In this document: piece by piece, positions 4,301 to 7,300 of the stretch
Layout: each line of letters opens with the position of its first letter
Numbering within the stretch: the stretch's first letter is position 1
From: Macrostomum lignano
Lineage: Eukaryota
Direction: 5' to 3'
Length of the DNA stretch: 64,000 bases
Assembly (NCBI GenBank): GCA_002269645.1
Contig: NIVC01000807.1
Span: forward strand, 62,001 to 126,000
Translations under genes and position numbers: made by a program
The notes under the pieces: model-generated
What the model was told of the DNA's origin: nothing
Database searches by the model: none
Seen by the model: the letters and a program-made list of their open reading frames with translations, nothing else

Positions 4301-7300
4301 TGGACTAAAATAGTCTGACTGACTAGTGACGCAAAGAAGATAATAAAAGCACAGAGCGCTTTGCTTAATGCCCTGTATCAGTGTTTACAACCACTTCTGT
4401 TTGCTAAATAACTTAGCTTACGTATAAACTTAAAGCTGAGCCTGAAATGATTTGATTTAAACCCGTGACAAACTAACCAGTGATAAAATCATTGTCAAGT
4501 GATAGAGTATAATGATTGTAGAGTTTTGGCCATAGACTAATACGATAAAAGTAACAATACAATTGCAGGGCTGCGGGCACCCTGACGCAACGCCTTCGCC
4601 TTCGGTGACATCGTCCCACAAGCAGCGGTGAGGCAATTCTGCCCCATTCCGCTGACACGTGAGCACATACTTCACGCCGACAGCGGGCCTGACTTTCTAA
4701 TCATCAGGCATGTACACTCTGTGCCTTATGGGTTGGCCCTCAGTTCAGTTTTTGTGCACCACAAGCCACCAAATGAATTTGGACGCGCAGTCGAGCACGG
4801 AATCAAACCAGGGGTCGTGGCGCGAGACAAGATCAGCAGACATGTTTACCGCTCCGCCTCTGACCATGCACTAACACTTCTTTATCACGTTATCACGTGA
4901 CCAAAAAGGCTTTTAAGTGTCTCAGTAAGGCACTAAAAAAGGTCAAGAAATGCCTTAATTACCGTTGAAAATACACGACTTGTTAAATTGTCTTGTCTGT
5001 AGGCATTTTCATCATAAAATGCTATTTTAAGGCTTGATAATGGGTGAAGAGAGGGCGCCTACAGGCAACAAGCCAACCAGAACCCGCCTCCCATTCTAGC
5101 CGACAAGGTCAAATTATCAGGGCGAACACAGGACAAGATCATGTGACCTGAATGCCGCATGGCACAGGTAGGCTCACGGGCAGCGTCACTTAATGCAATC
5201 TAATTATCGTATTGGCATGTGTAGTTGGCACTAGGCAAGTTAATTACATGTACTAGCTCGCTGTGATATAAATAAACTTTATTCCAGTCCATTCACAATG
5301 AAATAACCTGAGAGACAGAGGCGACCTTTGATCAAGGTCAGGTAGGACTGAGTAGTGAATCCTCACGTATAGAAACAATGTGCTGACTTCTGAGTTAACA
5401 AGGACAAAAAGCTCAACATTAGCTTTGAAAATGTCAACAAATTTCTTATCAGTTAAACCGAACAAATAACTGCCGACTGACCGCTCAATACTCAATGCTC
5501 GTGTGCTCATGCTCACTTGCTTACAGGCTCTTAGTAACCAGCACATCGAGTTTCTCCATAATGCAATTAAGGAAAATCCCCCCGTCCGGGCGTCCCCGCC
5601 CTCAAAGATCGAGCCATCGCTCGTCCCTAAGATCACGTGATGCCCTTGGCGTAGGAGTGGCTGGCTGGCTCCTTCAGCTCCCTTGGGGGAGGATGCTAGC
5701 TAGCTAGCTAATGGGAAAGATTTTTGGGCCTTCCACGAAAGAAAAAATAGAAACACAGAAACGGCAGGATGACGAAATCTCTGTGAGGGAGGGGAGGGGA
5801 GCCAATCCAGACCGATGGGCCCACCCGCCCCCGCCCAGCCACTCCATTCATGGCTGCCATTTCGGTACAACTATGGAATGGGGGGAGAGAGGTGAAGAGC
5901 CCCCGAAACTGTGTATAAATACGAGCCCAGGGTTAACACTTTTTGCCTGTCTGAAAGAGCGCCAAGCTTCAGATTTTAACACCGCTTAAAGTCTTTAATT
6001 GTTGGAAAGAAATCAGTTTTTGATTCAACAGACCGAAGACAACAATGGCAAGGACTTCGCAAGTTGGCCTAATAGTTGTGTCTCTGCTACTTGTGCTGGG
6101 CATGACCAACGGAATGGGTAGGCAGTTAATTGTTTAATTGTTATTATTAATCTCATAATTGCAAGTAGGTTTAAATCACTATATTAACTATATTTCTATC
6201 ATTGCTCTTCCTTCAAAATTGTCAAGACCTGTTGCGCCGTTCTCGTCGGTCAAAGGAAAGCGATCCCAACATGACGTCGTACGAGGAGGACTGTCCAAAC
6301 GGACTCATCGCCTATCTGAAGTTCAACACGCGTACAGGCGTGTTTGATTGCGCAATCAAAACGGCCGAGATCTGCCTGGCTCTCTGCCAGCTAGTTGAAA
6401 GCGTCAACTGGGACATTAGTAACACGCTGAGTATGCGGGACCAGGAGGACAGGGACCAGTGGTACTGCAGGGCTCTGCCAGGCTACCCAACCAGGCCCTG
6501 CTTCTTCAAGCCGAGGCATCAGATTGAAGACGACGTGGATCGGATGTTTAGGTACGAGTGGCCTTAGTGGCCAGTCAGTCTGACTGAGATTGCAATTCCC
6601 GGCTGTTCGAACACCTCGGATTTATTATTATTAATCAAATATAGAGATGTCAGACGCGTTTAATACATGACTGGCCACCCACGGAACATTTAAATTTGTT
6701 ATAATAGTCTTTGTTGCCGCTACTCCCAGCTACACTTGATGTTGTACAAAATATATTATATCATATATTATTAATTACTGTGTAATTACTTGCATAAAAT
6801 TTGCAATATCTAACCAATGCGCATACTATAACAAAAGAAAACTGAGTCACATTTTTAACGTACGGTACGGGTTACGGCAGCTTGATTGGATATTTTTTCT
6901 ATGTTCATTTATAATTGTTATTATTTTAGATTTTTTTCCTCAGCTGTGTTCATGTGTTTCCCGTTTTTTTCTTTTCCAAAATGCAATGTTTTAACAATGG
7001 TAATAATAACAGTCGTTAGGAACTGCTACAGCAATTGGCCGCTTATTATAAATATACGAAGACGCACTCCAGCTGATTACCTGAACTAAGCGTCTAGAAG
7101 CATTGTCAGAAACTGACAGAGAAATCGAATTAATCTTAGACTTTTTTGGCTTCAAACTAAGTGAGTGACACGGGTGGGTTTCACAAACGCGGAATTTCAC
7201 AACCGCTAAATTTTTCCAGTCACTTTCATATACGACAGTCTTTTTAGCGGTTGTGAAATTTCGCGTTTGTGAAAGCAACCCAGTGACACTTAATGAAAGT

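Follow-up and report, generated by a model that had tools for sequence, protein, structure and literature searches.

The locus examined here raises the question of whether an open reading frame (ORF) lying antisense within an intron of another gene is a gene in its own right and, if so, what it encodes. It belongs to the free-living model flatworm Macrostomum lignano and lies in a window of 64,000 nucleotides (nt), namely positions 62,001 to 126,000 of the forward strand of contig NIVC01000807.1 (GenBank assembly GCA_002269645.1); all coordinates below are counted from the first letter of that window. We consider it very probable that the locus is a genuine, transcribed gene nested in the topoisomerase gene TOP3B, and that its product is a secreted, convertase-processed and disulfide-bonded prepro-protein with six cysteines that belongs to a flatworm-only family.

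The gene is read from the plus strand in two coding exons. Exon 1 (6045-6117, 73 nt) encodes the predicted signal peptide M1-G23 (6045-6113), M24 and the first base of the D25 codon. It is followed by a phase-1 GT-AG intron of 109 nt (6118-6226, with GT at 6118-6119 and AG at 6225-6226), whose donor reads TGG/GTAGGC and whose acceptor is preceded by a pyrimidine-rich tract. Exon 2 (6227-6567) spans 341 nt including the TAG stop codon. The spliced product is 137 amino acids (aa) long and carries cysteines at positions 47, 66, 74, 78, 105 and 116, which corresponds to a spacing of 18/7/3/26/10. A TATA box, TATAAAT (5914-5920, plus strand; extended form TATAAATAC), stands 131 nt upstream of the ATG at 6045, the start context of which is ACAACAATGG, and no other ATG occurs in 5921-6044. 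Without splicing, exon 1 would reach a stop at 6137 after 30 aa, and the long ORF that covers exon 2 (6202-6567) begins with TTG. An initial annotation, made from the letters of the window, had proposed this very arrangement of TATA box, start codon, 73-nt exon, 109-nt phase-1 intron and second exon; every one of its coordinates was confirmed, and the 137-aa product with its cysteine spacing was reproduced from the spliced sequence. The element TATAAATAC is also located 123-124 nt upstream of the ATG of the M. lignano paralogue P0004 (Mlig014950/029358), amid otherwise unrelated flanks, and is not found within 250 nt upstream of the paralogue Mlig017821. Downstream of the gene, AATATA (6638) and AATACA (6662), 71 and 95 nt past the stop codon, are tentative candidates for non-canonical polyadenylation signals (6638-6667, plus strand).

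ORF length is no evidence of coding in this window, since it contains 80 ORFs of at least 90 aa, many of which are tandem-repeat artefacts. This wealth of long spurious frames, along with RNA support that is indirect and comes by way of annotation, is what could recommend the notion of a chance ORF or of a non-functional intronic transcript. The ORF is more than chance because it has homologues, is under purifying selection and shares intron positions with its relatives. Exon 2 is matched in tblastn searches by family members, with E values of 5e-43 and 1e-37 for the paralogues and 6e-7 for Echinococcus P0008. Coding sequences of the copies of the window gene differ at 5 sites (4 synonymous, 1 non-synonymous) and those of the two copies of P0004 at 8 sites, all synonymous, which yields a pooled ratio of 12 synonymous to 1 non-synonymous (binomial P = 6e-7 under a neutral expectation of 25% synonymous changes). 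The copies are 98.5-99.4% identical and free of gaps in their coding sequences, versus 93.5-94.4% identity with many gaps in the downstream flank. The initial annotation had pointed to paralogues, conserved cysteines and the ratio of non-synonymous to synonymous substitution rates (dN/dS) as the places to look: paralogues exist, all six cysteines are invariant among those of M. lignano, and dN/dS between paralogues is 0.15-0.23 with dS near saturation. Purifying selection on the family is clear. Full-length homologues in two flatworm classes, conserved introns and cysteines, the 12:1 substitution ratio and a transcript-derived gene model refute the chance-ORF reading, whose probability we regard as negligible.

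The description of the gene as hidden and unrecognized by the initial annotation held in part. The gene is not hidden, because an identical protein is already deposited in GenBank as a hypothetical protein of M. lignano (PAA58107.1/PAA76633.1, P0005; BOX15_Mlig005456g3/g1), next to a 99% identical one under the same name (PAA53968.1, P0001; BOX15_Mlig005456g2); what stands is that the protein and its family are uncharacterized. All three GenBank loci (L001-L003) are annotated with this two-exon structure and its phase-1 intron. Intron length is 99 nt in L001 and 109 nt in L002 and L003, a 10-nt indel of a kind that would not be tolerated in coding sequence. L003, which lies on the window's own contig NIVC01000807.1, shows no difference from the window in the stretches compared, namely the intron, exon 2 and 1 kb of flank on either side, and the GenBank TOP3B models of L002 and L003 (866 and 902 aa) span the nested gene on the opposite strand. 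The GenBank annotation of this assembly was built solely from transcripts derived from RNA-seq, assembled by StringTie/TACO and then processed by TransDecoder (PMC5730564). Since the annotation is transcript-derived, the splice junction 6117/6227 has indirect transcript support. As a side observation, the TOP3B model of L001, a truncated one of 516 aa, does not reach across the nested gene; in a comparison of L001 (NIVC01002993.1; 1-7517) with window positions 1-3665, no alignment extends upstream of window position 3666, a discrepancy that is either a structural difference or a misassembly between copies of the locus.

A Macrostomum profile run against 1.84 billion representative proteins retrieved only Macrostomum proteins and one cestode protein (Hydatigera P0003, E 2e-4). 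Follow-up profile searches of a larger collection gathered the M. lignano paralogues Mlig014950/029358 (143 aa) and Mlig017821 (152 aa), which are 57-63% identical to the window protein, together with members from the tapeworms Taenia, Echinococcus, Hymenolepis/Rodentolepis, Mesocestoides, Anoplocephala and Hydatigera. In Echinococcus, the family is represented by a tandem gene pair, the "expressed conserved protein" CDS37945.1/EGR_03869 and its neighbor CDS37946.1/EGR_03870. When a Macrostomum-only profile was aligned with a cestode-only profile by hhalign, the probability of homology was 95.6% (E 1e-8, 69 columns). The cestode orthologues are 60-94% identical among themselves, a degree of conservation that fits a constrained endogenous function. 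The window protein contains the conserved core C..TG.F.C..T..C..LC..W..D..C(R)..C, in which the columns C, T, G, C, T, C, C, W, C and R are invariant (alignments A3/A4). The profile searches returned no member from outside Platyhelminthes, and tblastn of family members against the window no second member. By sequence, the window gene belongs to an unnamed and uncharacterized family detected so far only in flatworms, namely Macrostomum and tapeworms.

Some of the deposited models of this family need to be read with care. The E. multilocularis model P0011 (CDS37946.1; LN902847.1, L010 3840-4512) is annotated with 153 aa and has a seemingly spurious last intron after ..HYRCR; read straight on, the sequence continues as CVQNICLYNYVRIKDRAYS and then a stop codon, which is the canonical C-terminus of the family, so that the protein actually made is probably some 108 aa long, the length of E. 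granulosus EGR_03870. The models of Taenia asiatica P0016, Mesocestoides P0015 and Hydatigera P0003 look like fusions of both tandem genes. Finally, P0018 (A0A1I8IIL6, 297 aa) is a probable chimera: it links unrelated sequence upstream to exon 2 of the window gene, at that exon's own acceptor.

Gene structure supports a deep homology of the Macrostomum and cestode members. Two introns, both in phase 1, occur at matching aligned positions in the paralogues P0004 and P0006 and in E. multilocularis P0008; the first lies where the predicted signal peptide ends, the second in the codon directly before TG[VN]F, and the window gene has kept the first and lost the second. Intron positions common to Macrostomum and Echinococcus point to old vertical inheritance within flatworms. 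The paralogues do not share the location of the window gene, none of them being nested in TOP3B. Macrostomum and cestode proteins have in common full-length homology, a predicted signal peptide, the core and the phase-1 intron positions. They differ in that the Macrostomum members have six cysteines, a propeptide with RxxR, five inserted residues and a C-terminal helix of greater length, whereas the cestode members have eight cysteines and no RxxR. The two additional cestode cysteines, one in GC.EW and the other the second cysteine of RCRC, are both missing from all Macrostomum members. Their joint absence could mean that the two form a disulfide together, though other cysteines may instead have re-paired.

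These introns bear directly on a name that UniRef attaches to the family. The paralogue isoform P0002 (A0A1I8H482) is called "Kp4" there, and P0004 "G_PROTEIN_RECEP_F2_3", although the two are mates in a cluster of more than 90% identity. At least six others (P0003, P0006, P0013, P0015, P0016 and P0023) are called "Apple domain-containing", and the chimeric model "DEP". As near-identical proteins are named differently, these automatic names are unreliable. The hormone-receptor domain of family-2 G protein-coupled receptors (GPCR) implied by the name of P0004 was rejected: the P0004 domain has no Pfam match, and the name conflicts with that of P0002. Kp4 was discarded as well, since no Pfam Kp4 match was found at E ≤ 10 in any member and no KP4/SMK structure among the Foldseek matches in PDB or BFVD. 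Taken at face value, the Kp4 label would imply a fungal killer-toxin-like gene in an animal; its product would be a secreted defense toxin, and the gene may have come from fungi by horizontal transfer. There is published precedent in a moss and in Panagrolaimus nematodes, where horizontally acquired genes of the Kp4 family have been reported. KP4 is likewise a small secreted cysteine-rich alpha/beta protein, and two helices occur in the predicted small alpha/beta model of the window protein. The KP4 toxin of the Ustilago virus has 10 cysteines, as opposed to six to eight in the flatworm family. Besides the conflicting names and the failed HMM (hidden Markov model) and fold tests, the flatworm genes are vertically inherited and contain spliceosomal introns at positions common to Macrostomum and Echinococcus, and no fungal or other non-flatworm homologue appeared among the 1.84 billion representatives. 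A killer-toxin origin is therefore hardly credible.

The anatomy of the product agrees with the reading of the gene as encoding a secreted prepro-protein. The N-terminus of the window protein comprises a basic n-region, a 15-residue hydrophobic core (V7-T21) and T-N-G at positions -3 to -1, with a likely cleavage after G23. In every family member, the chain begins with a basic residue and continues into a hydrophobic stretch 14-18 residues long, so that the N-terminus, which the initial annotation had likened to a signal peptide, has the same layout in the paralogues and in the cestode members. In the three M. lignano paralogues, the pro-segment closes with L-x-R-x-x-R and the next residue is S (RSRR, RLKR and RQIR), amid neighboring residues that diverge. 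Motifs of the R-X-X-R type are the consensus of furin and related proprotein convertases (PC). The furin-type site noticed at the outset is accordingly kept, with its following serine, in all three paralogues, which supports R29-S-R-R32 (6238-6249, plus strand; R-X-R-R before S), at the end of the 9-residue propeptide, as a candidate site of convertase cleavage between R32 and S33. The predicted mature domain, S33-P137 (6250-6564, plus strand), would comprise 105 aa including the six cysteines, and is acidic (isoelectric point (pI) 4.7, net charge about -6; 4.6-4.8 and 105-111 aa among Macrostomum members).

From these elements, a plausible course of expression can be outlined. The gene's own TATA promoter would drive transcription antisense within TOP3B intron 6. 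The 23-residue signal peptide would direct the 137-aa prepro-protein into the secretory pathway, where a convertase of the furin/PC type may cut after RSRR at the end of the short propeptide. Three disulfides would then stabilize the acidic mature domain of 105 residues, whose fold would be of the alpha/beta type and, according to the predicted model, would place the CxxxC pair in a helix. By analogy, the window protein probably works like the convertase-processed secreted prepro-proteins, such as prohormones and growth-factor precursors cut at R-X-K/R-R, with which it shares a signal peptide, a short pro-segment and a presumably disulfide-bonded mature domain.

The fold was approached with an AlphaFold2 model of the mature domain based on the 15-row family alignment, which reached a predicted local distance difference test (pLDDT) of 84.7 and a predicted template modeling score (pTM) of 0.78; a 3-row alignment gave a pLDDT of 42, and that model was discarded. 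The predicted elements are helix 18-23, strand 31-35, helix 39-48 (with CxxxC), strands 71-75 and 83-88, and the C-terminal helix 89-103. In Foldseek searches with the former model, the best PDB match had E 2.9, with TM scores below 0.33, and the best BFVD match E 0.53. No Pfam family matches the window protein, its mature part, P0002, P0003 or any domain row; matches at noise level comprise HAT_PRP39_C (E 0.09-0.18) and C1q (E 0.16-0.22). Sequence and profile searches of PDB returned antibody framework noise and a motif of about 20 residues, N..YD..TG.F.C.V, of C1q/adiponectin. The statement of the initial annotation that the cysteine spacing does not match the insulin or CHH/ITP patterns is borne out, as Pfam, PDB sequence searches and Foldseek pointed to no known hormone family. 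The insulin-like, CHH/ITP, eclosion-hormone and cystine-knot families show no relation in cysteine pattern or sequence, in keeping with the lack of Pfam hits. On the C1q likeness, the motif (K)F...C.N..YD..TG.F.C.V at about residues 47-68 of the window protein (alignments A4/A7) resembles the C1q strand motif N..YD..TGkF.C.V. The single-chain adiponectin trimer 4dou attains E 2e-4 to 6e-3 from three summed repeats, and single C1q domains E 0.07-0.4, so that no individual domain reaches significance; the likeness is probably convergent.

Two known kinds of module deserve closer comparison on account of the CxxxC helix. First, the family could be a divergent form of the PAN/Apple domain (PROSITE PS50948; PAN_1/PAN_4), which belongs to a known superfamily of secreted modules that bind proteins or carbohydrates and for which structures have been solved. 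PAN/Apple modules are likewise small, secreted and rich in disulfides; in their alpha/beta fold a five-stranded sheet packs on a helix, and the CxxxC of that helix provides two core disulfides. At least six Macrostomum and cestode members bear the Apple name in UniRef, and the cestode members share C-x3-C-x5-C, then aromatic residues, as in PAN cores. In the predicted model, the CxxxC helix is flanked by strands in a beta-alpha-beta-beta-beta order that would be compatible with PAN, and hhalign superposes it on the PAN helix. The Macrostomum members, however, are devoid of the third cysteine of the motif, the one after CxxxC, and profile, alignment and fold comparisons all fail to support the relationship. 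Profile HMMs of PAN gave no match at E ≤ 10 for sets of 15 and 8 domain sequences, the best score being that of PAN_4 with P0003 (E 1.2, 9.7 bits, cut-off 27); hhalign against an approximate alignment of six PAN sequences returned a probability of 2%; and no PAN/Apple chain was among the 29 Foldseek PDB matches at E ≤ 10, a result to be read with the small size of the domain in mind. Apple/PAN is the most consistent of the automatic labels, but remains unproven and a distant prospect, and we consider a PAN/Apple identity rather improbable.

Second, a cysteine-stabilized alpha-beta (CS-alpha-beta), defensin-like antimicrobial peptide is suggested by the cestode sequences, in which CxxxC on the aligned helix and the downstream CxC (in RCRC) together form the motif pair of that fold. 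The Macrostomum members have lost the second cysteine of CxC, and no defensin match was obtained in Pfam or PDB. The mature domains, moreover, are acidic and 105-111 aa long, unlike the cationic defensins of 35-50 aa. The acidity and size of the mature domain argue against a cationic antimicrobial peptide in general, and the defensin-like alternative is very unlikely.

What the putative mature protein does can be narrowed down to some extent. Nested genes are often tissue-restricted and M. lignano has many gland-specific secreted proteins; both facts, as well as the small, cysteine-rich and presumably secreted nature of the product, would suit a tissue-restricted reproductive (seminal-fluid or prostate) or adhesive-gland secretion. 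Such proteins usually evolve fast, whereas dN/dS is 0.15-0.23 here and copy differences are 12:1 in favor of synonymous changes; the strong conservation, with 60-94% identity among cestodes, argues against a fast-evolving seminal-fluid protein. Presence of the family in tapeworms, which have no adhesive organs of the Macrostomum type, argues against an adhesive protein of that type. Furthermore, the four Mlig gene names were absent from the searched supplementary tables on germline- and neoblast-enriched, reproduction-related and ploidy-responsive genes of M. lignano, which is a weak negative. A reproductive or adhesive role thus has a slim chance. Our tentative proposal for the role, which falls short of an even chance, is that the protein acts outside the cell as a conserved ligand or binding module resembling a hormone or cytokine. 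The bolder version, in which the flatworm-specific family would have a fold unrepresented in PDB, would have been conserved since the split of Macrostomorpha and Neodermata and would constitute a previously unknown hormone- or cytokine-like signaling ligand, seems unlikely to us.

Several observations weigh against a transcribed gene for a conserved, convertase-processed secreted protein and temper our confidence in it. Transcript support is indirect, by way of the method of GenBank annotation, and no canonical AATAAA or ATTAAA occurs in 6561-7200. As cestode members are devoid of RxxR, convertase processing may be specific to Macrostomum. The AlphaFold2 model rests on an alignment of 15 rows. 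No planarian or trematode member was found, in searches of limited sensitivity, which would be odd for a core signaling molecule. Finally, no literature on the gene or on any family member, including expression pattern or phenotype, was found.

A nested antisense gene in an intron is ordinary as an example of its kind, and the gene model was already in GenBank. What is added here is a coherent, unnamed family common to a free-living model flatworm and to tapeworms, among them the medically important Echinococcus, Taenia and Hymenolepis, for which we found neither a Pfam model nor any published work, and whose confidently predicted fold matched none of the structures searched. Its contradictory labels (Kp4, Apple, GPCR-F2, DEP), none of which passes the tests, call for caution before horizontal transfer of a killer toxin into animals is inferred. 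Should the family indeed consist of conserved secreted ligands, RNA interference and transgenesis in M. lignano could show what they do, which may also matter for the biology of tapeworms, and Macrostomum would offer a free-living genetic model for the tapeworm orthologues, such as the Echinococcus pair of which one is named "expressed conserved protein".

The host gene was mapped by tblastn with an approximate human TOP3B query, the matches of which carry their own E values. Seven TOP3B coding exons were located on the minus strand of the window, at 23863-23624, 21961-21788, 20568-20401, 17555-17217, 9695-9306, 8534-8247 and 1397-594, and the Pfam families Topoisom_bac and Zn_ribbon_TOP3B match the minus-strand ORFs 450-1415 and 9288-9779. 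Coding exon 6 (8247-8534, minus strand), which aligns with human residues 414-509 (E 7e-27), forms the upstream edge of the host intron, and coding exon 7 (594-1397, minus strand), which aligns with human residues 509-776 (E 2e-109), its downstream edge; the latter encodes the end of the topoisomerase domain (Topoisom_bac 339-411) and the TOP3B zinc ribbon (Zn_ribbon_TOP3B). The nested gene sits antisense in the intron of about 6.85 kb between these two exons. The location in TOP3B intron 6 proposed by the initial annotation is borne out by this seven-exon map, and the numbering is consistent with it provided that no small or non-coding exon was missed.

TOP3B introns are dense with tandem-repeat arrays, at 1444-1734, 8566-9261, 9836-10215, 10922-12428, 13724-13874, 14537-15810, 16339-17205, 17589-18525 and 19123-19990. 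The repeats include (ACAG)n, a 32-nt unit, a 26-nt unit (x15), a 16-nt unit (x94), (AGT)x424, (AGAC)x219, units of 17/34/51 nt and a 51-nt unit (x17). These arrays generate long spurious ORFs on both strands, and their copy number varies between assembly copies. ORF 22907-23863 (minus strand) starts as TOP3B exon 1 (23863-23624) and remains open into the intron; its Pfam C_tripleX match near the end (E 4e-10, 0 significant stretches) is most likely the translation of a low-complexity cysteine-rich repeat.

Elsewhere in the window, the longest ORF (29896-32043, minus strand; 715 aa, ATG start) translates a perfect repeat without a Pfam match and is a satellite artefact, not a gene. An Rfam scan of the window at gathering threshold gave no matches. 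ARAGORN called a 95-nt tRNA-Ala(AGC) at 61182-61276 (plus strand), which may be a false positive, an intron-containing tRNA or a pseudo tRNA, as no tRNA emerged from the Rfam scan. This call lies on the opposite strand within a region of cytosolic carboxypeptidase exons of the CCP1/AGTPBP1 type (60849-61652 and 62545-63843, minus strand), which are matched by Pepdidase_M14_N (E 6e-9) and TPR_CCP1_N (E 1e-15).

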